This document shows positions 19,615 to 40,758 of a stretch of 64,000 nt of DNA, in pieces. Under the pieces are notes generated by a model. That model ran no database searches and was not told the DNA's origin. It was given only the letters and a program-made list of their open reading frames with translations. Source of the stretch: Macrostomum hystrix (taxonomy: Eukaryota; Animalia; Platyhelminthes). Made by a program: the position numbers and the translations under genes. The DNA is taken from positions 3,287,708-3,351,707 of the forward strand of contig CATNEN010000010.1 in assembly GCA_950097015.1 (NCBI GenBank). Reading direction: 5' to 3'. Each line of letters opens with the position of its first letter. The first letter of the stretch is position 1.

Positions 19615-22600
19615 ATGAGCGACCACAGCCTGGAAGCAGTTCTCGGCACTCCGACATCATCGTCGGCGCCAACTTGTGCTCGAACCCCCAGCTCCATCCG
19701 CACCGGCTGGTTTGTGGCCACGCCTACGCGTGTCTCCGTGCCCGGCGCCACCATCGATGTTCATGACGTGTTAGTGTTGACCCACTTCGCCAAGCAGCCG
19801 CTGGTGGACTTTGGCCGAGTGCCGATGGGCCGCCTGGCCACTCAGCGGCTGCTCATCCAGAATCCGCACGCCTACGATCAGGAGGTGCGCATCAGCCGCC
19901 TGCCCGGCGAAAAGTGTGGCATCGCCTGCGTCGAGCAGGAGTTTGTTGTCAACGCCGAGGGCGAGTACATGCTCACGCTGACCTGGACTCCGCAGCGGCC
20001 TGGTGGCATGCGCGAGCTGGCCGCATTCCGCGTTGGCGACGTCTACAATCTGCAGGCGGTGCTGCTGGGCATGGCTGTGGAGGTCCCAGCCGCCAGCCAT
20101 GGCAGGAAGCGGAAGACCTGGGTGGAGCAGCGGCTGGCGGGGAAGGAGAACGATGGCGATGACAACGCAGCCGCTGTGCCATCGCCAGTGTTCAACGTGG
20201 CCAAGGCTCGCCTAGCTTCCGGTCCCGGCGGCTTATCTAGACGCCTGCAGACCTCCTTGATGCTGCCAGCGACGCCGGAGGAGGCACCGTTGGTGACGTC
20301 AACTTCGTCAGTTTCAGTTAGCGACGCTACGGTGGCGGCCAGTAAGAAGCCGCGCCTAGCCGAAGTTTCATTCAGCGGCAGCGGCGGCAGCGCGGCTTCC
20401 AGTCTGCTTTCGCATCTACTGCACTCCAGACTGGCTGCTCGGCTGCGGCCGAAGCACCATCCGGAGAGTCCGGTGGAACGATTCCGCCGGCGGCACAGTC
20501 TGCGCAGCACCCTGACTGGCCGGTTCGCGTCCTCCGCTGCTTCTGCAGCGAGAACTTCTGCCGCGGCTGCGGCGGCTTCACCGTCCGAGCAGGCGATCAG
20601 CAGCCCGCTGAGCGGTCGCATTGTTAAGCGTCGAAAGTCGAATAGAGCGCGAGTCAACGCGTCGACTGCGGCAGCGTCCGTGGCCGGATCCGCCGTTAAG
20701 TGCATTGTCGAGTCGCCCTCGGCCACCTTAGTCGACGCGTCCGATTTGAGCGGCCTGTCCATGCTGGCTCCGACAACTCCAAAGGCATCGACAGCTGCTT
20801 CGATGACCGCGGCGGAGCAGCGAAGCTGCAGCACCTACTATGATGAGCGCTGGCGGGAGAAACAGGTGAGTTGCAATTTGTGTCCTTTACCAAGACACTT
20901 AACTCTGCCTTGATTCAGTTCACCAGCTGTTAAAAGGGTACCAGCATCAGCTGGGGTAATTGAGGGTGAGTGTGGCGCCCCGAGTCCATGGACTGAACAG
21001 CCGTACGCAGCCTTCAGATGCGCTGCGCAATAGCTGCAGCTGTGCTGTCAGCTGCACATCTGGCCCACTTAGGGCAGTTGTAATAAAAAGTGATATTTTT
21101 ATTAATTAATATTAAGTGGTGGATTGACAGTTGATGGGATTGATTTTAAAGTGGCGATCGAGAGGTGATTAAAATGAGTTGGTGGTTTGACAGTCGAGTG
21201 AGATATTTAAGTGACGGACAACAGGATCAAAGGCAAATAGGTAAATTCCACAGAAATTCCTGCGTGTTTCCTTCAGGAGTTCGGTCTGCAGCAGTGGCTG
21301 AACTACTTGCTGACGCCCGGACTGGCTCTGCGCTGCTGCCAGGGCGAGGAGCCGGCACCACCGGCGTCGACAGCCAACTCTGTCGCCGATGTGACCGCAG
21401 TAGCCGCTGGCGCAACCACCGGGCCAGCGCCAACCAAGGAGGCCATGTCGCTGCGCGCCTATGCCGACTTTCGCGCCCTGGCAGCCCTGCGCAGCCGAGG
21501 TCGACGGCTGATCGGCTGCGAGAGCTTCGTGTCCGTGATCTGCCGCGTTGAGCGAGAGGTAATGCTTGAGCGGATTCAGAGATCCTCAGATTCTTCCGAA
21601 ATTCTGATCCCATTGGCCTATTTCCAGATTAGGCCAAGCCCAGATCCAGATTCTACATTTATTCTAGATCCTCAGATTCCGCCTGATCCCACATTTCCGC
21701 ATTCTGCCTGATCCCACATTTCCAGATTCTGCCTGATCCCACATTTCCGCATTCTGTCTGATCCCTCATTTCCAGATTCTGTATGATTCCACATTTACAG
21801 ATTCCGCCTGATCCCACATTTCCGGATTCTGTCTGATCCCACATTTCCGGATTCCGCCTAATCCCACATTTCCGGATTCTGTCTGATCCCACATTTCCGG
21901 ATTCCGCCTGATCCCTCATTTCCGGATTCTGTCTGATCCCTCATTTCCGGATTCTGTCTGATCCCTCATTTCCGGATTCTGTCTGATCCCTCATTTCCGG
22001 ATTCTGTCTGATCCCACATTTCCGCATTCTGTCTGATCCCTCATTTCCAGATTCTGTCTGATCCCACATTTCCGGATTCCGCCTAATCCCAAATTTCCGG
22101 ATTCTGTCTGATCCCTCATTTCCGGATTTCGCCTGATCCCTCATTTCCGGATTCTGTCTGATCCCTCATTTCCGGATTCTGTCTGATCCCTCATTTCCGG
22201 ATTCCGCCTGATCCCAGATTTCCGGATCTGTCTGATCCCTCATTTCTGGATTCTGTCTGATCCCACATTTCCGGATTCTGTCTGATCCCACATTTCCGGA
22301 TTCTGTCTGATCCCTCATTTCCGGATTCTGTCTGATCCCTCATTTCCGGATTCTGTCTGATCCCTCATTTCCGGATTCCGCCTGACCCCACATTTCCGGA
22401 TTCCGCCTGACCCCACATTTCCGGATTCTGTCTGATCCCACATTTCCGGATTCTGTCTGATCCCTCATTTCCGGATTCCGCCTGACCCCACATTTCCGGA
22501 TTCTGCCTGATCCCACATTTCCGGATTCTGTCTGATCCCTCATTTCCGGATTCCGCCTGCTTCCTGATCCCTGATTCCCAAACGCTTTCTACGTCCTCAT

Positions 22601-25600
22601 TAAGGACTACCATTTGTTTCTCTGCATTTTCCACCCCTTCCAGGTGAGCGAGGGCCGCCTTAGAGTCCGGTCTGATGTCTGCTTCCGCGCCGACAGGGGT
22701 CTCCGGGCCCGCCTTACAGATCTGTACCTGGCCTTTCACCCGCTCTGGCTGCGCCTCGCACTCGAGTCGCTATTCGGCGAGCCAATCCTTGCCCCGGCCG
22801 CGTCTTCCTCCGCTGACACTGGCGGGGCTGCCGGGCGTCGAACTCCGCTGAGATCCTTTCTGCAGTCTCGGGTGCTGTGGAGCCCCGGCCTGGCTGACCG
22901 CTTTGCCATGCCCGGAGTCTGCAACCTGTACAGGAAGGGTTTTGACGCTGAGCTGGCCAAGTGAGTGCGCGCCTGTCTGTGTCTGTCGTCTGTCTGTCGT
23001 CTGTCTGTCGTCTGTCTGACTGTCTGTCTGTCATTGTACCGTTCATCGACCTGCCCTGTCCCCAGATACGTGCTGAACAAATTCCTGGCCATTGTGTATT
23101 TCTTGGACCGAGCAAAAACCGAGCGCGTGATCGACTTCGATCCGTGTCTGTTTGCCAAGCGCTCTCCGCATAAGTGCACGAAAGATGTAGTGACCAGCTT
23201 CACCAGGGACTACCTGGCTGGCGAGGGCGACGTCATTAAGCACCTGGGCTACCTGGGTTACCGGTTGTGCCACGCGCAGAAGCCGTTGGACGAATTCCAG
23301 TTCGGAGTCACTAACCTGGCTGTGGATCTACGCGACGGAATTCGCCTCTGCCGGACACTCGAGATCCTCACCGGCGGCCGGGCGGCCCTGTCCGGCCGGC
23401 TGCGATGTCCGGCCATCAGCCGGCTACAAAAGATTCGCAACTGTCAAGTGGCTTTCGAGGAGCTTCGCGGACTGGGCGTGTCGCTGGATTGGACCTCCGG
23501 TGAGTGCCCATCTGTCGTACATTGCATTGGCTATATCATTTCAGCCATTCTATTACCTTACTTTCTTTACCTTGTATTAGTTAGGTATCCATCTGGGATC
23601 TGGAATCTGGGATCTGGGATCTAGGATCTGGGATCTAGGATCTGGGATCTAGGATCTGGAATCTGGGATCTGGGATCTAGGATCTAGGATCTGGGATCTA
23701 AGATCTAGGATCTAGGATCTAGGATCTGGGATCTAGGATCTGGGATCTAGGATCTGGGATCTAGGATCTGGGATCTAGGATCTGGGATCTAGGATCTGGG
23801 ATCTAGGATCTAGGATCTGGGATCTAGGATCTGGGAGCTAGGATCTGGGATCTAGGATCTGGTATCTAGGATCTGGGATCATGTAGTAGTTAATTAATCA
23901 AGATAGTACATTATATATTATCTTCACCACTAAAGATTTGATAATTTTCCGAAGTTATCATGCCATTCTATTGACCTCCCTTACCTCCATGACTTCATCC
24001 CTACTCCAGGCAACCCGATCGACCCGCGCGATATTGTTGACGGCCACAGAGAGAAAACACTAAGCCTACTCTGGCGCTGCCTGGCTCGCTTTGCCCTGGC
24101 CGAGGATCCCAAGCTAGTTGGCCGCCTCCTTTTCGAAATCCGCGCCCTTCGACGCGCCCTCCACGACCGCGGCGCCGCTTGCCCGCCGGCCCCCACCGAC
24201 CCGAAACCGGCCAGCCTCCTGCCCTGCTGGGCCGCCTGCGTGGCCGCCTTCGATTGGCCAGCTGGTCTACCGCCTCCGGCCGAGGACGATAGTCGCGTTG
24301 TCATGCGGTTGCTAAGGCACTACTGCGCCGCGCCACCGGCCTCCAGCGCCGAAGAGGATCAAGATTGGCGCACCGTGTCTGAACGGTTAGCTGAGCTGGG
24401 ACAGTGTCCGGCGCTCATTCTGCCGACTTCGTCAGACCGGCCGGACCGCAGCATGCTGCTCGCTCAGCTGGCCGCCCTGGCTGGCTGCCTGTTGAATCTC
24501 AACACCGAGTCCCGAGCCGCTCGCGTCATTCAGGCGGCCTGGCGCCGGCGTCGGGCACAGCGCACCGGTCCACCCGCCGCGCAGGAAGATCGCGTCGACG
24601 CGCTGCCAGCAGAAAATGCTAGCTGCTTCGTCGCTACCGTCACCGATTTCGGCATCGGCTTCTGGCCCGGCACACCTGGGCCGTCCTGCAAGCCGGCCGA
24701 CACTCCGGTCCGCTGCCTGCGCGACGAGGAGGCGGCTCGACGCTCCGCGGCCGCAAGCTCCATCCAGCGCTGGTATCGGTACGGGCGGCAGATCCGTCTG
24801 GGCCGGATTCGACGCGAGATTGAGCGGCGCCGGCGTCGGCGAGCAATCCTGGTCATCCTGACCAATTATCGGATTAGCAGGCGTAATCGGGCTTTCGCGG
24901 CGCTGCAGAGTCACGTGACAAGCTGGCTGGCTCGCAGACTGGCAGCAGCGTTGTGCATTCAAGAGGTTTGGAGGGCGCATCGATTGAGACGGATGGAACG
25001 CGAGAGGCTTGCACGAGTGCATGCTGCTTGCACTGTACAGCGGGCATGGCGCCTGTTCTGCACTAGACGGAGGGAGCAGGAGAGGCTAGAACGACAACGG
25101 CTTGAGCAAGAGCGGCTCGAGCAGGAAAGGTTGGAATGCGAACGGCTTGAGCACGAGCGACTTGAGAAGGAACGGCTCGAGCAGGAACGACTTGAGCAGG
25201 AATGGCTTGAGCGGGAGCGAATTGAGCAGGAACGGCTTGAGCAGGAGCGACTTGAGCAGGAACGGTTTGAGCGGGAGCGAATTGAGCAGGAACGGCTTGA
25301 GCAGGAACGGCTTGAGCAGGAGAGGCTCGAGCAGGAACGGCTTCAGCAGGAACGGCTTGAGCAGGAACGGTTTGAGCGGGAGCGAATTGAGCAGGAACGG
25401 CTTGAGCAGGAACGGCTTGAGCAGGAGAGGCTCGAGCAGGAACGGCTCGAGCAGGAACGGCTTGAGCAGGAATGGCTTGAGCAGGAGAGGCTCGAGCAGG
25501 AACGGCTTGAGCAGGAGCGGCTTGAGCTGGAGCGACTGGAACGAGAACGGCTTGAGCAGGAGCGGCTTGAGCAGGAGCGGCTTGAGCAGGAGCGGCTTGA

Positions 25601-27878
25601 GCTGGAGCGACTGGAACGAGAACGGCTTGACCAGGAACGGCTTGAACAGAAACGGCTTGAACAAGAACGCCTTGAGCAGGAACGCCTTGAGCAGGAACGC
25701 CTTGAGCAGGAACGGATTGACAAGGAACGGATTGAGCAGGAACGCCTTGAGCAGCAACGCCTTGAGCAGCAACGCCTTAAACAAGAACGGATTGAGCAGG
25801 AACGCCTTGAGCAGCAACGCCTTAAACAAGAACGGATTGAGCAGGAACGGCTTGAACAAGAACGGATTGAGCAACAACGCATAGAACGGGAACGCCTTGA
25901 GCAGGAGCGGCTTGAGCAGGAACGGCTTGAGCAGGAACGGCTTGAGCAGGCGCGACTTGAACAGGAACGTTTTGAGCTGGAGCGAATTGAACAGGAACGA
26001 CTTGAGCAGGAGAGACTCGAGCAGGAGCAACTTGAGCAGCAGAAAAGGGATCAAGTAAGGCTGGAGCTTCAGCGTCAATCTGAGAGCCTTGCCGCCTGCC
26101 GCATCCAACGTGCCTGGCGTGGCTTAGTTGCCAGGCGACTCAGACGCCAGCAATCGGAGCAGGAGCAGCGTAGTCGGGCGGCCACGACTCTGCAGGCGGC
26201 CTTCCGCGGCTGGCGAGTTCGCGCCCGCTGCCAGGTGGCCGCCATGCCGCAGTTGCGTCGTCGAATCTCTGCGGCTTACGCCGACGCCTGTCGCTACCCG
26301 GAACGGCGCCTCCTGGCGCGCGCTCGATCGGCGCTCCGTTTCGCGCGCCAGCAACCGCCAGCGGCTGTGGCCCAGCAGCTGGCCGACCTGCGCGCCGGCA
26401 CTAGCCACTCCGCCAAGCTGTGCGAACTGCTCTGCAGCCAGGTGAGACTGCGGTTGTCTTTGGGGAGAAAAGCTTATTTAATTGAAAACGTGCAAGCCTA
26501 TAAAAGCTATTCACTACCGCAAACCAATCTGCGCAGGCTGGCGCAGTCTCCGCCCTGTTCGCACTGATGGCCGGCTGCAACCGGAGCCTGCCGCACCAGT
26601 ACATTGTGCTGCACAGTGTGCAGGTGCTACACAATCTCATTCGGCACTCGGCCACCGCCGCCAGCGTGGCCAAAGAGTGTCCGGCCAATGCTGGCGACGT
26701 CTTGACCGACGCTTTGGTGTCCGGCGCGGTTGTTCGGGCCTCTCCGTTGCAACAGGTGAGCTGGCGTGTTCCTTGACGACTGACCTGTTGACATGTGAGA
26801 GAGGCAAATGAGCAGTGTGAGACAGTCAAGGGATAAGGTGAGACAGAAATAGGATAAGGTGAGACAGTCAAGGGATAAGTGAGACAGAAATAGGATAAGG
26901 TGAGACAGAAATAGGATAAGGTGAGACAGAAATTGGATAAGGTGAGACAGAAATTGGATAAGTTGAGACAGAAATTTGATAAGGTGAGACAGAAATTGGA
27001 TAAGGTGAGACAGAAATAGGATAAGGTGAGACAGAAATTGGATAAGGTGAGACAGAAATAGGATAAGGTGAGACAGAAATAGGATAAGGTGAGACAGTCA
27101 AGGGATAAGTGAGACAGAAATAGGATAAGGTGAGACAGAAATAGGATAAGGTGAGACAGAAATTGGATAAGGTGAGACAGAAATTGGATAAGGTGAGACA
27201 GAAATTGGATAAGGTGAGACAGAAATTGGATAAGGTGAGACAGAAATAGGATAAGGTGAGACAGAAATTGGATAAGGTGAGACAGAAATAGGATAAGGTG
27301 AGACAGAAATTGGATAAGGTGAGACAGAAATAGGATAAGGTGAGACAGAAATAGGATAAGGTGAGACAGAAATTGGATAAGATGAGACAGAAATAGGATA
27401 AGGTGAGACAGAAATTGGATAAGGTGAGACAGAAATAGGATAAGGTGAGACAGAAATTGGATAAGGTGAGACAGAAATAGGATAAGGTGAGACAGAAATA
27501 GGATAAGGTGAGACAGTCAAGGGATAAGGTGAGGCAGGAAGGCAGGATATTGTGATGGGACAGACAAGCCTAACTCCCCTCGCCCACCCCGCCACGCCGC
27601 TGAAGGAGCTGGTGAAGGCCTGCGCCGGCCTGCTGGCTTCGCTGGTGTCCAGCGGCTTCGCCCTGTCCCGCCGGGCCACGGTCCGCCTGCGGGAGACCCG
27701 AGACGCCCTCCTGAGGCGGGCCGGCCTGGAGGAGAGCCGCCTGGTCAGCCAGTTAAAGGCCTCGGGCGCCCTGCTGGTTCGCGTGGAGCCGGACTGGGTG
27801 ATGAAACGGTCAGCCAACCAGCACATGGCCAGCCCCATCACTGCCGTTACCTACCTGTGCGAGCTGCTGCACCACTGA
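19615..27878 (+). CDS. ASPM: Abnormal spindle-like microcephaly-associated protein (ASPM/Asp) orthologue, ~1735 aa
   Basis: Exons 19615-20865, 21277-21558, 22644-22960, 23066-23499, 24010-26441, 26537-26755, 27606-27878; GT-AG introns, phases consistent, total 5208 nt. ASH domain ([15 protein letters not shown]), YDERWREKQ|[16 protein letters not shown] domain ([35 protein letters not shown]), second degenerate CH, IQ motifs, CNRSLP HEAT/Arm region, C-terminal EPDWV..PITAV. The last acceptor (AAG at 27603-27605) is the least certain. Confidence 0.92.
21640..22560. repeat. 25-bp intronic minisatellite (GATCCCACATTTCCGGATTCTGTCT)n, ASPM intron 2
   Basis: Direct reading; period 25 (21910, 21935, 21960). 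Confidence 0.95.
23590..23881. repeat. 7/14-bp intronic repeat (GGATCTG GGATCTA)n, ASPM intron 4
   Basis: Direct reading. Confidence 0.93.
25078..26043 (+). repeat. Coding 15-bp/pentapeptide repeat (LEQER)n, ~65 units, inside ASPM exon 5
   Basis: In frame with flanking IQ motifs, no stops, extensive synonymous codon variation between units. Confidence 0.85.
26815..27535. repeat. 21-bp intronic minisatellite (GAGACAGAAATAGGATAAGGT)n, ASPM intron 6
   Basis: Direct reading; most units contain AAG|GTGAGA. Confidence 0.95.
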
Positions 27879-27949: not shown

Positions 27950-29348
27950 ACCCTTCTCATTTCCTCACATTTCTCATGTCTCTGTCAACCATCTCTCATT
28001 TCCTCACATTTCTCATGTCTCTGTCAACCATCTCTCATTTCCTCACGTTTCTCATGTCTCTGTCAACCATCTCTCATTTCCTCACGTTTCTCATGTCTCT
28101 GTCAACCATCTCTCATTTCCTCACGTTTCTCATGTCTCTGTCAACCATCTCTCATTTCCTCACGTTTCTCATGTCTCTGTCAACCATCTCTCATTTCCTC
28201 ACGTTTCTCATGTCTCTGTCAACCATCTCTCATTTCCTCACGTTTCTCATGTCTCTGTCAACCTTGTCTCATTTCCTCCCGTTTCTCATGTCTCTGTCAA
28301 CCTTGTCTCATTTCCTTACGTTTATCATGTCTCTGTCAATCTTGTCTCATTTCCTCACGTTTCTCATGTCTCTGTCAATCTTCTCTCATTTCCTCACGTT
28401 TATCATGTCTCTGTCAACCATCTCTCATTTCCTCACGTTTCTCATGTCTCTGTCAATCTTCTCTCATTTCCTCACGTTTCTCATGTCTCTGTCAATCTTC
28501 TCTCATTTCCTCACGTTTATCATGTCTCTGTCAACCATCTCTCATTTCCTCACGTTTCTCATGTCTCTGTCAACCATCTCTCATTTCCTCACGTTTCTCA
28601 TGTCTCTGTCAACCATCTCTCATTTCCTCACGTTTCTCATGTCTCTGTCAATCTTCTCTCATTTCCTCACGTTTATCATGTCTCTGTCAACCATCTCTCA
28701 TTTCCTCACGTTTCTCATGTCTCTGTCAACCATCTCTCATTTCCTCACGTTTCTCATGTCTCTGTCAACCTTGTCTCATTTCCTCACGTTTATCATGTCT
28801 CTGTCAATCTTCTCTCATTTCCTCACGTTTCTCATGTCTCTGTCAACCTTGTCTCATTTCCTCACGTTTATCATGTCTCTGTCAATCTTCTCTCATTTCC
28901 TCACGTTTCTCATGTCTCTGTCAACCTTGTCTCATTTCCTCACGTTTATCATGTCTCTGTCAATCTTCTCTCATTTCCTCACGTTTCTCATGTCTCTGTC
29001 AACCTTGTCTCATTTCCTCACGTTTATCATGTCTCTGTCAACCATCTCTCATTTCCTCACGTTTCTCATGTCTCTGTCAACCTTGTCTCATTTCCTCCCG
29101 TTTCTCATGTCTCTGTCAACCTTGTCTCATTTCCTTACGTTTATCATGTCTCTGTCAACCTTGTCTCATTTCCTCACGTTTCTCATGTCTCTGTCAATCT
29201 TCTCTCATTTCCTCACGTTTATCATGTCTCTGTCAACCATCTCTCATTTTCTTCACGTTTCTCATGTCTCTGTCAATCTTCTCTCATTTCCTCACGTTTC
29301 TCATGTCTCTGTCAACCATCTCTCATTTCCTCACGTTTCTCATGTCTC
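27950..29348. repeat. 39-bp pyrimidine-rich minisatellite (CTCATGTCTCTGTCAACCATCTCTCATTTCCTCACGTTT)n
   Basis: 13-aa periodicity in three spurious ORFs; begins ~70 bp after the ASPM stop. Confidence 0.96.
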
Positions 29349-30296: not shown

Positions 30297-31250
30297 TAGT
30301 CGAAGCAGGATCTGCCAATAGAATCGAAGCAGGATCTGTCAATGGAATCGAAGCAGGATCTGCCAATAGAATCGAAGCAGAATCTGCCAATAGAATCGAA
30401 GCAGGATCTGTCAATGGAATCGAAGCAGGATCTGTCAATAGAATCGAAGCAGGATCTGTCAATTGAATCGAAGCAGGATCTGTCAATAGAATCGAAGCAG
30501 GATCTGTCAATTGAATCGAAGCAGGATCTGCCAATTGAATCGAAGCAGGATCTGTCAATTGAATCGAAGCAGGATCTGTCAATGGAATCTAAGCAAAATC
30601 TGCCAATAGAATCGAAGCAAAATCTGCCAATAGAATCGAAGCAAAATCTGCCAATAGAATCGAAGCAGGATCTGCCAATAGAATCGAAGCAGGATCTGCC
30701 AATAGAATCGAAGCAGAATCTGCCAATAGAATCGAAGCAAAATCTGTCAATTGAATCGAAGCAGGATCTGCCAATTGAATCGAGGCAGGATCTGTCAATG
30801 GAATCGAAGCAGGATCTGCCAATAGAATCGAAGCAGAATCTGCCAATTGAATCGAAGCAGGATCTGTCAATGGAATCTAAGCAAAATCTGCCAATAGAAT
30901 CGAAGCAAAATCTGCCAATAGAATCGAAGCAAAATCTGCCAATAGAATCGAAGCAGGATCTGCCAATAGAATCGAAGCAGAATCTGCCAATAGAATCGAA
31001 GCAGGATCTGTCAATGGAATCGAAGCAGGATCTGTCAATAGAATCGAAGCAGGATCTGTCAATAGAATCGAAGCAGGATCTGTCAATTGAATCGAAGCAG
31101 GATCTGCCAATAGAATCGAAGCAAAATCTGCCAATAGAATCGAAGCAGGATCTGCCAATAGAATCGAAGCAGGATCTGTCAATAGAATCGAAGCAGGGTC
31201 TGTCAATAGAATCGCAGCAGGGTCTGTCAATGGAATCGCAGCAAGATGAC
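30297..31250. repeat. 24-bp minisatellite (AATAGAATCGAAGCAGGATCTGCC)n
   Basis: 8-aa periodicity in ORFs 30077-31264 and 30342-31343. Confidence 0.95.
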
Positions 31251-31866
31251 CAATCGAATCGCATCAGGAACTGTATAGTTAGAATTTTTCTTGTGAGTCG
31301 TAGAATTTTTCGCGGCAGGAATCGCGCTAGAAAAAAAACTTAACACGAAACAACATTTTCGTTATTGTGACTCTTGTCAGTGGAGGTGAGTGCATCTCAA
31401 ATCCTCCAATCTAAATTTATTCGTTATTATATTTTTGTAAATTAAAATCTACGCGCTCTACAGCACATCGAGAGTTTTAGGCCAGTATTAAACTAGACGC
31501 GCTCGCTACTACTCACCAGCAGTAGTGTGTTCAGAGTTTTTGATAGTGACAATTTTTATACAACAAAGTAAATACGAGTAAAAGTATTAAAGCATAAAAC
31601 TGCACCACATAGTCACAAATATATAGTTTCTAAAACATTGATCAAAATATTTTGATGGACGGATATCTCAGCAGTTTTGTAGTGGCGCACCCTTCATGCT
31701 ACTCAGTAAGAAGTAGAACCGCGCGTAAAAATAAGCATAATTCTAAGAATATAAAATATGGCTTAATTGGAATCATTAGAATCAGGAAATATTTTCAGTT
31801 TCTGAGTCCTGCACAAAAAGCAAATAGCGTTTGCTCGGCTGTTCTGTTCGGGTCGTGCATCTCTGC

Positions 31867-34800
31867 TCAAGTCAGCAGCTCCGGCTTCTTCTCCTCTGGC
31901 GGCGGTGGCGCACGAGCCTCCTCCAGCTCCTTCTTCAGCGCTTCGAGCTGCAATGAGTATAATGAGCATAGTTAGCATTGTTTGATATTATGTACTCAAG
32001 GATGATTAGAGTGAACTCAAATACCGGTTAGAGTGAACTCAAATACCGGTTAGAGTGGACTCGAATGCTGGTTAGAGTGAACTCAAATACCGGTTAGAGT
32101 GAACCCTCAAATTCTGGTGAACTCAAATTCTGGTTAGAGTGAACTCAAATGCTGATTAGAGTGACCTCAAATGCTGCTTAGAGTGAACTATTAGATGTGA
32201 AAATATAACTGAAATATTAGGAGTGGAAAGTGAGTACATTGCTCAAATTTGAGTAGGCTAAGATGAGGGGAATGCTGACCTTGGCTGCCAGAATCGCCTC
32301 GCGCTCCTTCGACGCCTGCAGTTCCAGCTCGGCTGTCACCTGCCTGTCCTCCGCCTCCGTGGCTCGCAGCTCGGCCTCCCTGAGCTGGCCTTGCAGCTGC
32401 TGCACGGCGCCGAGGGCTTCGAAGGCTCGGCCGGCGTCAGGAGTCTGTGCTCGGACGCCCGGCTCCATGACGACGACGTCCTGCGGAGGCGATTCCGGCG
32501 ACTGCGACAGGCTGCGCGAGTGCACATTAAGGTCCGGTCCAATGGCCTGCACGGTTTCATCCAGCGGCTCCTCCTGCTGCTGCTGTTGCTGCTGGGGAAG
32601 TGGAGTCTCCGGTGCATCTGGCTCCACTGCCTCTGCTGCTTCTGGGGAAGCGAACTCAACTTTTTGCTGCTTCTGCTGCCTGAAATCGAGGTAATTGATT
32701 GCTCAACTTGTATAATTACTAAGTTTGGACTTAAAAACTCGTGACACTCAAGTCCAACTCCACGCAAGCCAGGTGTCTTAAAAGAGCTTGTTTACCCGTC
32801 AGCAGCCTGCTCAGCTGGCTCGGCTGCCTGACTGGCGTCCGACGTTTCGAATCGCCGACCCTGCAGAGCCAGCAGTGAGTCCTCGATCGGCATCGTCGGC
32901 TGCGTCGCCTGGCTACTTTGCGTCGGCTGGCGCGGATCCCGTGTCAGGTTGGCCACGAGAGTGGGATCCGGGATCATGTGGTAGGGAAAGCCCAGATCCT
33001 CCAGGATGCAGGTGGCCGCGTGGCACCAGTCGCGGGCCTCACTCTGCGGATGATCGAGTCGATCGAATGGGGGAGAGAGTTAGATAGGCACAATGTGGTT
33101 GGCGGAGTGGGCTTTGCGGAGTGGGGTTGGCGAAGTGAGGCTGGCGGAGTGGGGTTTGGCTAAGTGCGGTTGGCGGAGTGGGGCTGGCGGAGTGCATGGG
33201 GTTGGTGGAGTGCGGGGCTGGCGGAGTGGGGTTTGGCTAAGTGCGGTTGGCGGAGTGGGGCTGGCGGAGTGCATGGGGTTGGTGGAGTGCGGGGCTGGCG
33301 GAGTGGGGTCGAAGAAGTGCGGTTGGCGGAGTGGGGTTGTTGGTGGGTATGGCGGAGTGAGATTGGCAGAGATTGAGAGTCGGGTAGTGGGGCTGGGGTT
33401 GTGTGATGGGCAGGGTTGGCGGGGTGGGGTTGGCGGAGTGGGGTTGTTAAAGAAGGCTGAAAATCCGGAAGTTTTAACAAAGCTGTGAACCAAGGCGTAG
33501 TTCTGGTTTGGCATTCTAAAAATGTAATGAACTAGATAGACGTGGATCTGTGAATTGTTGTGTAGGGCATCTAAGCGGGTTTGAATCGGACTGTGGGCAC
33601 AGAGAAAATAGGCAGTGCACATTTGAGCAACACTGATAGCAGAAATAGTTTATAAGTGCTGTGACTGTGGCTGTGAATACATTAACATCGCAGTGCAATA
33701 TATAAATAGACTGCGCATAGCCAAGAAAGTTTATGCAGGTTGTGAAAATACAGAATAAAGCAGTTTAGCCGAACTTCAAAAGTTTTCTCTGGAGCGACTC
33801 GGTATTGTTCATACTTATGAATCTTTCAGATTTAGAAATTCGACTTTAAAAAATGTAATAATGCGACTGTTGTGACTTGTTGCTTACAATGTGCCACGAT
33901 AATATCACAGTTCCAGATATTCTTAGAAATAGGTGACTGAGTGATTAATATCAATTGATGGAGCACTCGAGCTAACCTTGCTTGAAACCTGCGCATTGGA
34001 AGCTAAAGTTGAATGACCTGGAACAGGAGCGCAAAGCGATAAGAAAAACATTTTCCACGGAAGACGCACAACTTAGTGACAGGAGAACAACAGGGAAGCA
34101 CTCGAACCAGCGAGTGAGTCTGTAAGCGGTTGAGAACCTTTTGGCCCTATATATTAACATTTAAAGGAATTCGAATTCTACTATGTCAAATTATAACAGA
34201 ATATAGTCGCTCTAACCTATGAGCAGTTTAAGTCTATTCATTCGAAGCCCTTAAATAACTACTTTTCATTCTTAACAAACTTTTCAAATCGTCGTTTTGG
34301 ATTTTTGGCGCGATTTCAAACTTTGCTTACGACGCAAGTTGGTCCCAATAAGCAAAAAATCCGGAAATTCTAGGAAACAGAAAGCACACTCGAATATCGC
34401 ACCGTAAACTGACTTTCACTTTGATTGTCTGAGGCTGATTATCCTCTGAAAATTTTTTTTCCGCTTGACGATGCGATGACGATGCGATGACAGATCGCTT
34501 TAAGGTATCTTGCTTTGAGAAGCCATTTCTTTGAAAACAAGAAAGTGAGGCACAGAGACAAATAAAATAGTTGTACAGTCTCGGAGTGCACGCCAGTTGC
34601 GGCACTGTTCAAACGGGTGCAGGAACTCAAAACAGGAAACTAAAATCAAATAAAAATTGTGGCTACGTTAAACAGAAATTTGAAAATATCTAATAAGATG
34701 ATGGAGATGTTGCATTTTTGTTTGTCTCTGCATTCAAGTTTTACCGGAATTTTGTTGGCCACGGACTGCAGCTCCCTAATTCGCTCCTCATCCCGCTGTG

Positions 34801-37800
34801 GCTGCCAGCGGCAAAGATCAAAAAATTGTTGGAATACGAGCATAATAAGGTGTTTTCGTGTTTCTTTTGAAACTAAGCAACTTGTTGTAGACCGTTTACT
34901 AAAACAAAAAGCGACGTGAATTCAGATATTTCCACTGTCGGCAGGGCAATGCGATGTTGATGTTCTTAAGTTCGGATGTAATTTGAGGAACAAATACATA
35001 AGCCAGACATGCATTACAATCAGATACTGCTTGGCTCAATGTTCTCACTCACCTTCATCCTAATGAGCTCAGCCTGCTCGCTATCGAAATCCTCGTCCTT
35101 GACGGCCATTCGCTGCGCCACAATGCCGCTGACAATCACGGAGCAGGAGTCAGCCAAGTACACGGTGAACTTGGTCAGCCACTCGCCCAGCTCTTTGAAC
35201 GAGGCCAGCAGTTCCTCCGGAGTGGCCGAGGCCATCAGGGCAGCCTGGTGAGCCTCCTGGCTGTTGCCGGGATAATCAGGGGCCAGGCGCAGCAGCGACT
35301 GGATCATCCAGCGAAGCATGCCTGTGTGCAGCTGCTTGGCCGACTCCGTCATGCGCGTGTCCTCACTGTCGATGCCGCTGGCCACCTTGTTGGCCCACTT
35401 GCCCACCTCAGTCACCACCATGTTGGGGTCCAGACTGGGCTCTCGCTGATTCGCTGGCAGATCCTCCTTTGCTGTGCTCCCAACCTGGAAGAGATTCGAG
35501 TATGGGAATCAGCTTCGAGTCGCTTTCGATCCTTTATACATCTTTTAACTGAGTTCAGTCACGCGAAGAAAAGCGTTTACTCGTAAAATTGCGTCTCTAA
35601 TGGCGTCTCTAATAGCATCTCTAATAGCGTCTCTAATAGCGTCTCTAATGGCGTCTCTGATAGCGTCTCTAATAGCGTCTCTGATAGCGTCTCTGATAGC
35701 GTCTCTAATGGCGTCTCTTATAGCGTCTCTAATAGCGTCTCTTATAGCGTCTCTAATAGCGTCTCTGATGGTGTCTCTAATAGTGTCTCTAATGGCGTCT
35801 CTAATAGCATCTCTAATAGCGTCTCTAATAGCGTCTCTAATAGCGTCTCTAATAGCGTCTCTGATGGTGTCTCTAATAGCGTCTCTGATGATGTCTCTAA
35901 TAGCGTCTCTAATAGCGTCTCTAATAGTGTCTCTAATAGTGTCTCTAATAGCGTCTCTAATGGCGTCTCTGATAGCGTCTCTAATGGCGTCTCTTATAGC
36001 GTCTCTAATGGCGTCTCTAATAGCATCTCTAATAGCGTCTCTAATAGCGTCTCTAATAGCGTCTCTAATAGCGTCTCTGATGGTGTCTCTAATAGCGTCT
36101 CTGATGATGTCTCTAATAGCGTCTCTAATAGCGTCTCTAATAGTGTCTCTAATAGTGTCTCTAATAGCGTCTCTAATGGCGTCTCTGATAGCGTCTCTAA
36201 TGGCGTCTCTTATAGCGTCTCTAATGGCGTCTCTAATAGCGTCTCTTATAGCGTCTCTTATTGCTTCTCTAGTAGCGTCAAAAGAGGCGTCGCTCTAAAA
36301 ATTTGCATCAACTTTTTGTTATGGGTGAACACCTCCTTCGGCAAGGTGAGGGAGTGAGAAAAAGCGCTAAAAATAGCCCTTCATGACTCATTCGAGAGCC
36401 AAAAAAAACTCACTCATTGGAGAGCCAAAAAACTCACTCATTCGATTGATGCTAAAAATAGAAACAAACGTTATATACAGTGGGCAACAACCTCACTCCC
36501 AGGATGATGCTAAAAATAGCAGCCGGTGACTCACAGCCGCAATAGTCTCGTCAATGATAGCCAGCCAATCCTCGATCAGGGTGTAGAAGCGAGTCCACTC
36601 CTGCTCGGGCAGCAGCTTGCCAGTGTTGAGCACCGACTGCAGCCGAGTCGTCCAGGTCTCCAGGATGTTCTGCAGATTGATGACGCCCCTGGCGACGCCA
36701 TTCTCTCCAATCAGGCGGATGTTCATCTGGCGCATCAGTTTTTCCACTAGAGAGGATACAGCGCTCATCGTTTTCTTCTCCGGAAACTCGGCGCCATCCT
36801 CTGCGCGATGCCGGGCGAACAGCGTGACGCAGGCGTCGTTCCAGGTGAGCATCAGGCGGCGCATGGAGGCCATGTTCTCCTGCAGGTCCAGCATGATGTC
36901 GCCGCCGAATGAGTTGGCCTCCTTGTTGAGCACGGCTTCCAGTTCGCGCAGGCGAGCGAGGATCTGGGCGGTGTTCTCCGCGGTCAAGAGGCCTTTTAGA
37001 CGGGCGGGAGCTTCGCTGAAAGATTTTTGGGCGGGAAAGTAGCCATGGTGAGGAGCGAAGCAAAATATAAAAGTACACGTGCTTAGGAGCAGTGCTTAAA
37101 TCAATTCACAAAGCACGCGTGCAAAAGTACAAGAGGCAAGCAAAATGGCAAAAACTTTGCAGAAAGCAACGGGTGCCTGGTCAGTTAAAAAAAAGTCGAA
37201 AATCAGACAAGCACTTGAAAACTAGTTCATTTTTAACATTTTTTCACATTTTCAAATGCGGTTAATTTCATGGCACGCGAAAATCAGGATTTACCGAATG
37301 TCATCAACGCTGCAAAATGGAGATCAATGGGCGAATTGCTTGGTACTTCATTCGCTTAAAATAAGTGATTGTACTTTAAGAAGGAATTGGCACCCTGGAA
37401 CAGCATTTCATGACAGTATGAGCACTCGCAGCCAGCTATGGGGTAATTCTGCTGATTACACTGACTCCCGAGCACACACGCACATACCCTGACTTTCTCA
37501 TCGTCAGGCACTGTACACTCTCATTGTGCCTTGGAGGTTGGCCCTTAAGGACGCAAATTGCACGGCAAGCCCCCCAAGCCTTCTCTCCCTAAAAGAATGT
37601 GGCCTCGCTGCGGAATCGAGCTCAGGGACCTTGGTGCGAGAGGCAAACACGTTAGACTGATCTGGCACTCACCCCCAACGGAAGCTCTAGGGAATTAACA
37701 GCCTTGCCCAAGGACGCAAATTGTCTCCGTGGGCTGCGAATCGAACCGCCGACCTCGATGAAAATTTCGGAGCTCAAACTACTCAGTGACATGCTCCCCA

Positions 37801-40758
37801 GTTTATAGCATGGCAACAAACTAATTCAAAGACCGAATCCCCGATGAGTTCAATGTGTGCTCTATGACAAAATCAACAATGACCGCACTCACAGGAACTG
37901 ATCCTCGAAGGTCTCCTGCAGGCTGGAGGTCAGCTGGCGCAATCGTCCCAGATTCTTTCGGCTGCTCTCGTCCCTGACGCGGAGGTGGCCAACGAAGGCG
38001 TCAACCTTCTCCCGCCAGGTGTCCACCAGGGCCTGCACCCTGGCCAGGTCCTCCGTGTCCCGCTCGGACAGCAGGACAGCGAAATGGCCGGCCAGGTGCT
38101 GCCACGCCTTCTCGGTCGCGTGCAGCCGCTTGCACGAAACCAGCTGAGTCTCTTCCATCACCTTCAGGGCCAGACAGTAGGCCGTGTGGCTCCACAGCTC
38201 GCGCTCCTCCGTCAGCTGGCTCACCTAGCGACGGGTTGGGGTGAAACGTGCACTTTTAGTGCCCTTTTAAAGCCTGTGATTAATGTTGATTGCAAAACCT
38301 GTATTTCTTACGATCAATGACCACCTGTATATCAATGACGACATGGGATCAATGACGACCTGTGATTAATGACCACCTGTGATTAATGACCACCTGTGAT
38401 TAATGACCACCTGTGATTAATGACCACCTGTGATAAATGAACACCTGTGATTAATGACCACCTGTGATTAATGACCACCTGTGATTAATGACCACCTGTG
38501 ATTAATGACCACCTGTGATTAATGACCACCTGTGATTAATGGACACCTGTGATTAATGACCACCTGTGTATCAGTGATCACCCGTGGCCCATGACCAGCA
38601 GATGTAGCCAGCCGCCTTACCTGAGCCTCCAACCGGGCCCTCTGCAGCTCGTAGAGTCCGTGATATTCACCCAGCAGGTCGGCGGACCTCTTGGCCTCCT
38701 CCAGCGCCTTTCGCAGCTCATCCTGGGTGGCCCTGGCCTCGCCGCTGATCTGCCTGTCGTGCTCCTTGACGTCGGCCAGCTCTGAAGTCAGCACCCCGAT
38801 GGTCGTCTTGAATCGGAGCAGCTCCTCGGTGAGGCGCCGGTCCAGAGCTCGCTGCGCCATCACCTCGTCGTGCAGACTCTTCACCTGGGCAGGCACCTTG
38901 GACAGCAGCAGGTTGTAGCGGCCGCGTAGGGTCGACAGCAGCTGGCCGCGCTCAACGCACTCCACCGTGACCTGGCGGATGAGCTCGTGGAACACAATGT
39001 TGTACACATCCTGCTCTCGCTTCACCAGATCCAGCAGGCGGTGCATCTGGGTCGGGCCGGACACTTCGAAGTCTTCGTCGACACCGACGCTGGCGAGCAT
39101 CTGGTCGAAGGTCTTGGATAGCTGCAGCACCTCCCAGCGGCTCGTCGGCTTCCTGGAGTGAGTCGAGTGTTCAACGATGAAGGAACAAAGTCAAGCCAAG
39201 ATGGTGAAGCTTTCACTTACAGTGACGGAAACATCACCAGGTGCTTCTCGTGGTCCTCTGGCAGAGTTGAATGGTCACTGAAATGTTAGCGAGGGCTAGC
39301 TTATTGTTTTATGTAAGAAACGCAGGTGCCAAAGTGGGAAAACAATGACAATGCAGTAAGGGAACGAGTGGCAGAGCGGACTGACGCTTTTGCCTCTCGC
39401 ACCAAGGTCCCTGAGCTCGATTCCGCGGCGAGGCAACATACTTGGGGGTTTGTTGTGCAATTTACGTCCTTGAGGGCCAACCTCCAAGGCACAGTGAGAG
39501 TGTGCACTGCCTGACGATGAGAATGTCAGGGCAGTGGTACACACCTGTGCAAATGTGTGCCCCACAGCCCTCCTGCAATTATTAATTATTAGTTAACAAG
39601 CGCGCAATATTATGAAGCGAGCGGTCGTCAGTTCGCTTCCACGGAATGACCACATTTACTTGACCAATTTACACTCAGATATACTCAAGCGAGTGGCGGA
39701 ACAAACCTTGGATTGTACTCAAGGCCGATCACGCCTTTGTTCTTCACCACGTGAAACTCCTCCGGTATGAGCGAGTCCGGCAGGCGCGCCTCCTTGGAGT
39801 CGCCCTGCTGAGCCTGCAGTCGGCGCCGCTGCTGCTTCTGCTTTCGCGCCTGCTCCCTGATCAGCGTCGGATCCGCGGGGTCGCCGGCTGACCCGGCCGT
39901 CGCCTTCGCCTCCGTCGACTTCACCGCGCTCGGCGCGTCGTATAGGAAAGAAATGTCCCTGCGGCAAGAGGTTCAAGGATCCGTTCAATTTTGCTGCTCA
40001 TTTACTCTACACTATACTCAATACTATTATAAGTAGTCAGTAACGAAAAAACATAAAAACTCACTTTCCAGCGCCACACACGCAGATTGTGGAGTCTGTG
40101 AGGTGCTTCAATTTCTCCCTCCGCTTGGGATAATTCCACACATTGGACGGCTTCGGTAGGGCGCGAGGCCGGACCAACGAGGAGGGCAGCTCAGCGCCGA
40201 CAAAGTCGGGCGGCTGGGTCAGGGAGAAGATCACCTCCTCAGGTAGGTAGTCATTGTGTGACTGGTCCTGCTGCTGCGGTTGCTTTTTCTTCTGCTGGTC
40301 TTCTGTTGGCCTGTTGGCTCCCGGCTTGATTTTCGGAAGAACTGTTCGAATGAAAGTGGTCGTTCATTCCGATCTTTCACGGCTGTTGGGGGTCGAATTG
40401 AAAAGCCAGAGTAATGCCCGATTCTGATTGGCTCGTGTGCGTATGTGGTTAGGGGTAAAGGAATGGGCAGAATCAGATTTCCTCCTTTCTGATTGGTCGG
40501 TGTTATTTAGGTTAATTTGAATGGCAGTACTGTAGTCTATTCTGATTGGTCGGTGCTGTTCAGGGTTAAATCGAAAGACAAAGTACTCGATTCTGATTGG
40601 TTGGTGCTGTTTAGGGTGGAATTAAAGGACTGAGTAGTGGTCGATTCTGATTGGCCAGTAGCTGACTCACCCTGATTCTGCACTCTCGGCGTGGGTCCTG
40701 CGCTGCCGCCAGGCGAAGCTGTGCCGCCGGCGCGAAATTCCACCAGCTGCGAAGTCAT
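31867..40758 (-). CDS. AXDND1: Axonemal dynein light chain domain-containing protein 1 orthologue, ~1059 aa
   Basis: Exons (transcription order) 40758-40671, 40341-40065, 39958-39707, 39277-39221, 39152-38621, 38224-37893, 37015-36535, 35484-35053, 33043-32796, 32679-32280, 31947-31867; GT-AG, phases consistent, total 3180 nt. Motifs NDYLPEEVIFSLT, VWNYPKRREKLKHL, GAGK|DISFLYD, LIPEEFHVVKNKGV, LVMFPSLKPTSRWEV, p28-like VYNIVFHELIRQVTVECVERGQLLSTLRGRY. Confidence 0.85.
32006..32188. repeat. 22-bp intronic minisatellite (TTAGAGTGAACTCAAATACCGG)n
   Basis: About 8 diverged units. Confidence 0.85.
33096..33445. repeat. G-rich intronic repeat (TGGCGGAGTGGGGT-like)
   Basis: Direct reading; many GG-GGGG runs on the plus strand. 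Confidence 0.85.
35595..36265. repeat. 12-bp intronic minisatellite (ATAGCGTCTCTA)n
   Basis: Explains the ASLI-repeat ORF 35600..36298. Confidence 0.95.
37487..37671 (-). mobile_element. tRNA-derived SINE, family A, copy 1
   Basis: Reverse complement aligns by eye with 39366-39531 (GCCTCTCGCACCAAGGTCCCTGAGCTCGATTCCGC...GGGCCAACCTCCAAGGCAC...CCTGACGATGAGAA.GTCAGG). Confidence 0.75.
37672..37799 (-). mobile_element. tRNA-derived SINE head, family B, directly upstream of SINE-A copy 1
   Basis: Minus strand GGGGAGC...GGCGGTTCGATTCGC (B box)...GCGTCCTTGGGCAAGGC, the post-tRNA motif common in metazoan SINEs. Confidence 0.6.
38318..38570. repeat. 17-bp intronic minisatellite (GATTAATGACCACCTGT)n
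   Basis: Direct reading. Confidence 0.93.
39360..39570 (+). mobile_element. tRNA-derived SINE, family A, copy 2
   Basis: GGGAACGAGTGGCAGAGCGG (A-box-like)...GAGCTCGATTCC (B-box-like); inverted homologue at 37487-37671. Confidence 0.75.
40420..40660 (-). promoter_or_regulatory. Cluster of five NF-Y-type RRCCAATCAG boxes in AXDND1 intron 1
   Basis: ATTGG at 40427, 40492, 40545, 40596, 40650, each within TCTGATTGG. Confidence 0.5.

Follow-up and report, generated by a model that had tools for sequence, protein, structure and literature searches.

ASPM and its counterparts, Asp in Drosophila and ASPM-1 in C. elegans, are proteins of the spindle pole and of microtubule minus ends, and a review of the family describes an architecture of an ASH domain, calponin-homology (CH) domains, IQ motifs, and a C-terminal Armadillo/HEAT-like region, with 24 IQ motifs in Drosophila and 60 to 81 in mammals; it mentions no coiled coil or charged repeat for the family (PMC10047693). 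Here, we analyze the ASPM/Asp orthologue of the flatworm Macrostomum hystrix, which lies on the plus strand at 19615-27878 of a stretch of 64,000 nucleotides (the window; GenBank assembly GCA_950097015.1, contig CATNEN010000010.1, positions 3,287,708 to 3,351,707) and which carries, within its IQ region, a long tandem array of five-residue units, most commonly ERLEQ. The long IQ array of ASPM could serve either as a calmodulin-regulated switch or as no more than a stiff spacer. In myosins VI, VIIa, and X, a single alpha-helix (SAH, or ER/K helix) placed after the IQ motifs extends the lever arm. SAHs have a high content of E, R, and K and are stabilized by salt bridges (PMC5347031). In mitosis, the SAH of INCENP acts as a tether and binds microtubules as well (PMC4571873). 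A further point of comparison is the LERER repeat of Mena (ENAH), which comprises 13 to 15 units in 91 to 121 residues, is charge balanced, has the EVH1 domain on one side and the proline-rich region on the other, and is known to bind the alpha5 integrin tail (PMC3514034).

The Macrostomum protein has the same domain order as ASPM, Asp, and ASPM-1. However, its IQ array is very short and degenerate, with about eight motifs split by an ERLEQ array of 255 to 350 residues. We lean toward the view that this array, once translated, is a long, net acidic, calmodulin-independent, SAH-like spacer helix supplying length that is otherwise given by IQ motifs. Like the repeat of Mena, the array is a five-residue repeat of the L-E-x-E-R type that is lineage specific within a conserved cytoskeletal regulator (PMC3514034), but it has 51 to 70 units, carries Gln for one Arg, and sits in ASPM rather than in an Ena/VASP protein, without the placement between EVH1 and proline-rich regions. 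We therefore do not class it as a Mena-type LERER repeat; the resemblance is one of motif type, and no homology is implied.

Tandem Repeats Finder reported a period of 15, 62.9 copies, and 79% matches over 25096-26039, and when read in the frame of its flanks the array resolves into 64 units of 15 bp (25080-26039, plus strand; 320 residues, which are residues 1119 to 1438 of the protein by exon arithmetic), with ERLEQ in 32, ERIEQ in 8, and 18 rarer variants. The first-pass annotation, a reading of the letters alone, had counted about 65 in-frame pentapeptides within one exon and had set the limits at 25078-26043, a few bases off ours. The array does lie within a single exon, exon 5 (24010-26441, plus strand, 2,432 nt), and inside a stop-free open reading frame (ORF; 24240-26567). 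This exon encodes, in order, the end of the CH region, six IQ-like motifs (24522-25073, plus strand; individually 24522-24563, 24756-24797, 24843-24890, 24897-24938, 24948-24992, and 25026-25073), the ERLEQ array, two further IQ motifs (26094-26228, plus strand; 26094-26138 and 26184-26228), and the start of the C-terminal region. Four motifs before the array and two after it fit a strict IQ pattern; with two degenerate motifs, this gives the six plus two proposed at first pass and places the array between the sixth and seventh motifs. The pair after the array is the best Pfam IQ stretch, and exon 5 as a whole scores 28.5 bits for Pfam IQ, in three stretches, against a cutoff of 20.3. In composition, the array is 36% E, 21% R, 18% Q, and 21% L/I/F (E plus D, 37%; R plus K, 23%), with a net charge of -45 over 320 residues, and it is flanked by IQ regions with net charges of +28 (before) and +20 (after). 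A two-unit DNA pattern had 21 matches in the 220-Mb genome, all of them in two ASPM copies, and a reversed control had none; the array is thus not a chance feature, and a dispersed repeat family can be rejected on the same grounds.

Very probably the array is exonic and translated, as had been supposed at first pass; the supposition is now backed by codon-periodic variation, the absence of a donor, conservation in Macrostomum lignano, and transcript-guided models from that species. The array shares its reading frame with the IQ motifs on both sides. Its unit entropy at codon positions 1, 2, and 3 is 0.55, 0.21, and 0.99 (permutation P = 0.0036), and the eight non-coding arrays of the window whose periods are multiples of 3 show no 3-periodic pattern (P = 0.12 to 0.95). 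The synonymous variation between units that had been remarked upon earlier is plain in the counts, with 75 synonymous versus 42 non-synonymous codon differences from the unit consensus, the replacements being mostly conservative (L/I/F, E/Q/D, and Q/R/K). By this pattern of variation, the array is coding-like and under purifying selection. No stop codon occurs in the 248 units of four arrays (both copies in this genome plus two M. lignano loci), and no GTRAG donor occurs from 24900 to the end of the array; the six real donors of the gene are all GTRAG or GTAAT.

In M. lignano, the array occupies the identical site between homologous IQ motifs, in the same phase and with a DNA consensus only one base different (the shared unit being GAG/GAA CGG CTT GAG CAG), with 51 units at L005:13896-14660 and 70 at L009:7198-8247. 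Exon 5 is collinear with the M. lignano exon at L005:12807-15008, and its flanks have diverged between the two species with a synonymous divergence (dS) of 0.91 to 0.99 and a non-synonymous divergence (dN) of 0.09 to 0.18. The intronic minisatellites of the two species, in contrast, have neither period nor sequence in common. Being present in both species, the ERLEQ array is old and predates their split. A second copy of the region allows a further comparison. A block of at least 5400-46900 of the window, including ASPM and an ACAA2-like gene, is present again in inverted orientation on contig C33 (C33:5001445-5040640) with 98 to 100% identity; the assembly may have kept two haplotypes apart here, or else the segment was duplicated very recently. 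The exon flanks of the two copies differ at 2 of 1,239 bases, and four gains or losses of whole units (-6, +5, -1, and +1) separate their ERLEQ arrays, leaving 64 units versus 63. The non-coding arrays compared between the same copies (26817-27537, 27955-29348, 30300-31273, and 21675-22553) have 34 versus 7, 36 versus 17, 41 versus 34, and 35 versus at least 43 copies; with copy numbers 2- to 5-fold apart while the unique sequence is about 99% identical, turnover of non-coding arrays must be very fast. The one-unit difference between the ERLEQ arrays, albeit a single comparison, fits a loose constraint on length.

As to origin, the IQ spacers just 5′ of the array (MERERLARV in M. hystrix and RIELERLRAERLERE in M. 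lignano) are of the ERL type and are plausible seeds, from which the array may have arisen by expansion within the IQ spacers. Multi-unit blocks recur within the arrays (a 20-residue block at 105-bp spacing and, in L009, a block of about 17 to 20 units found three times), which shows growth by unequal exchange, and the array would still be turning over by gain and loss of both whole units and multi-unit blocks. The first-pass annotation had suggested that the array was born from the same minisatellite process seen in the introns. A process of the same kind is plausible, given the recurring blocks, but the array is old and common to M. lignano, which the intronic arrays are not. Identity between units is 79% in the ERLEQ array versus 85 to 96% in the intronic arrays.

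These same data bear on the alternative that survives best, although we consider it unlikely, namely, that the array, although translated, plays no part of its own in length or structure and is simply a tolerated minisatellite expansion, in a genome full of minisatellites, giving a harmless soluble helix. The window provides the setting for such an expansion, since its 64 kb contain about 28 distinct tandem arrays (from 32 rows, of which some overlap); a period of 15 bp keeps the frame automatically, and the variation in unit number (63, 64, 51, and 70) and the block duplications inside the arrays are what tolerance would produce. What this alternative accounts for poorly is the retention of the array at one site in two species whose flanks have a dS of about 1 and which share no intronic array, together with the 3-periodic variation, the synonymous excess, and the conservative replacements. 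It also sits uneasily with the fact that the two copies are one unit apart while the non-coding arrays around them changed 2- to 5-fold.

With respect to structure, each unit, read directly, contains two opposite-charge pairs, R(i)-E(i+4) and E(i)-R(i+3). Exons were searched and folded singly, and AlphaFold2, run on the single sequence, predicted helices at exon residues 309 to 525 and 552 to 740, with block means of the predicted local distance difference test (pLDDT) reaching 90; without a break, the first of these predicted helices continues from IQ motifs 5 and 6 into the array, and the second leaves the array and extends across IQ motifs 7 and 8. The hydrophobic periodicity of the array peaks at 5.0 and 2.5 residues (0.19 to 0.20), and the hydrophobic moment, normalized, reaches 0.19 at period 5 but only 0.013 at 100 degrees and 0.017 at 102.9 degrees. 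This absence of power at 3.5 to 3.6 residues means that there is no amphipathic face and no heptad seam. Of the charged helix or coiled coil suggested at first pass, it is therefore the charged helix that remains as the best structural reading, on the strength of the AlphaFold2 model and the periodicity; a canonical coiled coil, which calls for hydrophobic residues at heptad (3.5-residue) spacing, is not supported. The likeness to SAHs is that of a long charged helix in line with IQ helices, which would act as a predicted spacer of fixed length; unlike known SAHs, however, the Macrostomum array is a strict five-residue repeat with Leu or Ile and Gln in each unit, is net acidic, and belongs to a non-motor protein. 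The earlier estimate of about 48 nm for a continuous helix is arithmetically right (320 residues at 0.15 nm each).

Because it is hydrophobic at regular intervals, the array might instead be a self-association module, an antiparallel hairpin or an intermolecular helical bundle that dimerizes or clusters ASPM at microtubule minus ends. We judge this less probable than tolerated expansion. Leu, Ile, or Phe does stand at each fifth residue, AlphaFold2 pairs the two halves of the array as a hairpin with a pLDDT of 80 to 90 on the paired parts, and the LERER repeat of Mena is itself a predicted coiled coil that might oligomerize (PMC3514034). Yet without a heptad or 3.6-residue signal (0.013 to 0.017 versus 0.19 at period 5), the leucines would spiral around the helix without forming a seam, and helices of the same kind, each with a net charge of -45, would repel one another. 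Moreover, long helices in single-sequence AlphaFold2 runs often come out as hairpins.

The spacer helix that we favor would find its functional rationale in the shortness of the Macrostomum IQ array. Pfam IQ scores sum to 20 to 28 bits in Macrostomum, whereas the sum is 109 for Schistosoma japonicum, 86 for Taenia solium, and 214 for Opisthorchis felineus. Between the point where the first CH domain ends and the conserved C-terminal block, the Macrostomum protein measures about 480 to 490 residues with the array removed and 734 to 829 with it included; the corresponding distance in five parasitic flatworms is 666 to 967 residues, so that the array brings Macrostomum into the range of other flatworms. 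The claim made at first pass that the array largely replaces the IQ array is in line with a weak and short IQ array (20 to 28 versus 86 to 214 bits) and with a distance in the range of other flatworms, while the substitution itself is a correlation and not a demonstration. Replacement of IQ motifs by a helical spacer is, from these sequence comparisons, a reasonable hypothesis. We envisage that the 320 residues would form one net acidic, calmodulin-independent alpha-helix of up to about 48 nm, continuous with the IQ-motif helices that flank it. This SAH-like helix would set the microtubule-binding N-terminal/CH part apart from the C-terminal part, much as SAHs lengthen the IQ lever arm of myosins, and so provide length that other ASPMs would obtain from calmodulin-clad IQ motifs.

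Several observations weigh against this proposal. The AlphaFold2 hairpin turns through residues 526 to 551 with low confidence, the mean pLDDT is 54.8, and a hairpin leaves both readings, one single helix and an antiparallel pair, in play. A net charge of -45 departs from the near-neutral E/K/R composition of classical SAHs, and Leu or Ile at each fifth residue makes the array more hydrophobic than those already known. The spacing comparison is a correlation over few species, and copy numbers ranging from 51 to 70 mean that any constraint on length is loose. Finally, the case for translation of the M. hystrix array is built from sequence and from M. lignano models, and the M. lignano models are themselves incomplete. 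Relative to its own genomic locus, P0001 is short of 10 units (150 nt) and P0160 of 40 units (600 nt), shortfalls from which partial removal and assembly collapse are not distinguishable, and in P0002, a UniRef model of earlier date, the entire array is missing together with two IQ motifs.

Such gaps would be expected if most mature mRNAs had lost the array, spliced out as an intron or “exitron,” leaving a protein with a short IQ array only, an alternative that strikes us as distinctly improbable. In its favor are P0002, which joins IQ6 to IQ8 across a 900-nt GT..AG gap (L005:13860-14759), and the missing 150 and 600 nt of array in P0001 and P0160. However, the donor site of the P0002 gap is GCATGG in the M. 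hystrix window, so that the GT is not conserved, and there is no GTRAG donor upstream of the array or within it; for these reasons, we read P0002 as probably a prediction or assembly gap rather than as evidence of splicing. Nor would the coding signature and the conservation of the peptide between species be explained if the array were never translated. P0001 and P0160, which are NCBI BOX15 gene models, do, in any case, contain part of the array. Their annotation rests on transcripts assembled under guidance of the genome by StringTie/TACO and supplemented with mapped Trinity contigs, the ORFs being called by TransDecoder (PMC5730564). Short-read assembly and repeat masking readily make gaps of this kind, and those in the M. 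lignano models are presumably artifacts of collapse or masking in such pipelines. A search of public assemblies for transcript-derived protein fragments of 99 to 315 residues that cross from the 3′ part of the array into the next IQ motifs gave no scoring match and hence no direct RNA evidence.

A right-handed beta-helix like that of bacterial pentapeptide-repeat proteins, a family built of A(D/N)LXX units, which would make the array a compact rod of about 8 nm, can be set aside with little hesitation, because, although a PDB sequence search with the array matched only pentapeptide-repeat proteins (5dra, 2j8k, and 4yei; E = 6.5e-4 to 0.02), these matches depend on Leu at every fifth residue alone and have low alignment confidence, the inward-facing i-2 position, which is small in that family, is Glu here, Pfam run on the array alone at E values up to 10 returned one unrelated family and no pentapeptide-repeat family, and AlphaFold2 predicts helix.

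Returning to the spacer helix, one wider extrapolation, which we put forward as possible but rather doubtful, is that central ASPM might be mainly a rigid ruler with interchangeable chemistry. Under such a scheme, Macrostomum would have swapped most of a calmodulin-clad IQ rod for an acidic single helix derived from a coding minisatellite, distant ASPM-like proteins would have reached the same solution by non-repetitive means, and length would set spindle-pole spacing and be tunable by gain and loss of units. The distant proteins in question are P0118 (L006, Logan DRR671440), P0258, and P0133, which resemble the Macrostomum protein in having CH domains, a charged, net acidic helical stretch of about 400 residues, a short IQ array, and a CNRS.PHQ block, the charged stretch occupying the position that the ERLEQ array has in Macrostomum; a first IQ motif precedes the charged stretch in P0118 and P0258, and none was detected there in P0133. 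The charged stretch in these three lacks tandem repetition and is either E/K rich or A/E/R rich, and over the CH region they are about 30% identical to the Macrostomum protein (32 to 37% in a phmmer-based comparison). Given this low identity and different composition, the charged stretch of these proteins probably arose independently. In this regard, a lineage that keeps ASPM but places a calmodulin-free helix in the IQ interval would amount to a natural substitution experiment on the idea of a ruler, and M. lignano, in which RNA interference and transgenesis are available (PMC5730564), carries the array. The array would also be a clean example of a minisatellite held for a long time under protein-level selection, with its non-conserved intron neighbors in the same gene acting as controls. 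If it were dispensable, the finding would come down to a lineage-specific low-complexity insert only.

The array appears to be confined to Macrostomum within the sequences surveyed. With P0002, the M. lignano model that lacks the repeat, as query, a full HMMER search returned 1,712 relatives at E ≤ 0.001. The proteins closest to that of the window are those of M. lignano (70 to 76% identity). Among the 150 best cluster representatives, only M. lignano has a period-5 repeat or a 100-residue window with more than 60% E/R/K/D/Q, and no comparable repeat was found outside M. lignano among about 110 further named relatives. In total, some 260 other ASPM-family proteins lack a comparable repeat, and the comparison across flatworms that had been suggested at the outset gave 51 and 70 units in M. 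lignano and no such repeat in 24 proteins from trematodes and cestodes. In the library of papers searched, none mentioned both Macrostomum and ASPM, and none used the repeat, or RLEQE, as a motif name. The first-pass annotation had allowed that the repeat might already be a described ASPM feature in a related species; M. lignano does have it, but in deposited proteins labeled “hypothetical protein,” and the array is undescribed in the literature.

The identity of the host gene as an ASPM/Asp orthologue is supported at several points along its sequence. The ASH domain encoded by exon 1 matches Pfam PF15780 (E = 4.7e-21, 75 bits, residues 52 to 147), as does the M. lignano orthologue P0160. The Pfam CH model scores 19.8 bits on the window ORF, under the cutoff, and 28.7 bits on P0160, over it; the CH region matches named ASPM proteins by phmmer with E = 1e-107 to 1e-54. 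The best source-named relatives in the HMMER search are ASPM or abnormal spindle proteins of vertebrates, molluscs, annelids, insects, and parasitic flatworms. No Pfam model matches the Macrostomum protein's C-terminal region; the C terminus of M. lignano ASPM aligns with those of Lottia, Schistosoma, Taenia, Mesocestoides, and P0118, and a CNRSLPHQ-type C-terminal motif is also found in distant ASPM-like proteins.

Seven exons, all on the plus strand, were placed with M. lignano proteins as a guide together with splice signals, and all introns are GT-AG. Exon 1 (19615-20865) starts at an ATG in the ORF that contains the ASH domain and ends at the donor CAG/GTGAGT. Exon 2 (21277-21558; acceptor TTCAG/, donor GAG/GTAATG) was found by tblastn with residues 60 to 160 of P0001, at 72% identity, and exon 3 (22644-22960) by tblastn with P0001 and splice sites. 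The first CH domain is encoded by exon 4 (23066-23499; Pfam CH E = 9.5e-4 on the ORF, with 35 to 45% identity to ASPM proteins). Exon 5 was delimited by its open frame, the acceptor CTCCAG/, and the donor CAG/GTGAGA. Exon 6 (26537-26755) carries the conserved C-terminal block with the CNRSLPHQ motif and is 87% identical to residues 1085 to 1159 of P0001, and exon 7 (27606-27878), which includes the stop codon, was placed by its translation and acceptor and is 81% identical to the end of P0001. The exon lengths sum to 5,208 nt, or 1,735 codons plus a stop, and adding them gives a protein of about 1,735 residues. A strong donor-like sequence, CAA/GTAAGG, lies at 26055, inside exon 5 and 16 bases past the array; were it spliced to the acceptor of exon 6, 482 nt would be lost and the reading frame shifted, and it was rejected as a donor.

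Three of the introns hold tandem repeats. Intron 2 contains a 25-mer present 35 times (21675-22553), which served as a non-coding control, is longer in the C33 copy, and is absent as such in M. lignano; intron 4 contains a 7-mer present 41 times (23591-23880); and intron 6 contains a 21-mer present 34 times (26817-27537), a second non-coding control, with only 7 copies in C33 and no 3-periodic variation. Downstream of ASPM, on the minus strand at 32217-39130, lies a gene with ORFs resembling axonemal dynein light chain. The gene downstream of ASPM in M. lignano matches Pfam Ax_dynein_light, and with such a neighbor in both species, the gene order around ASPM appears to be conserved.

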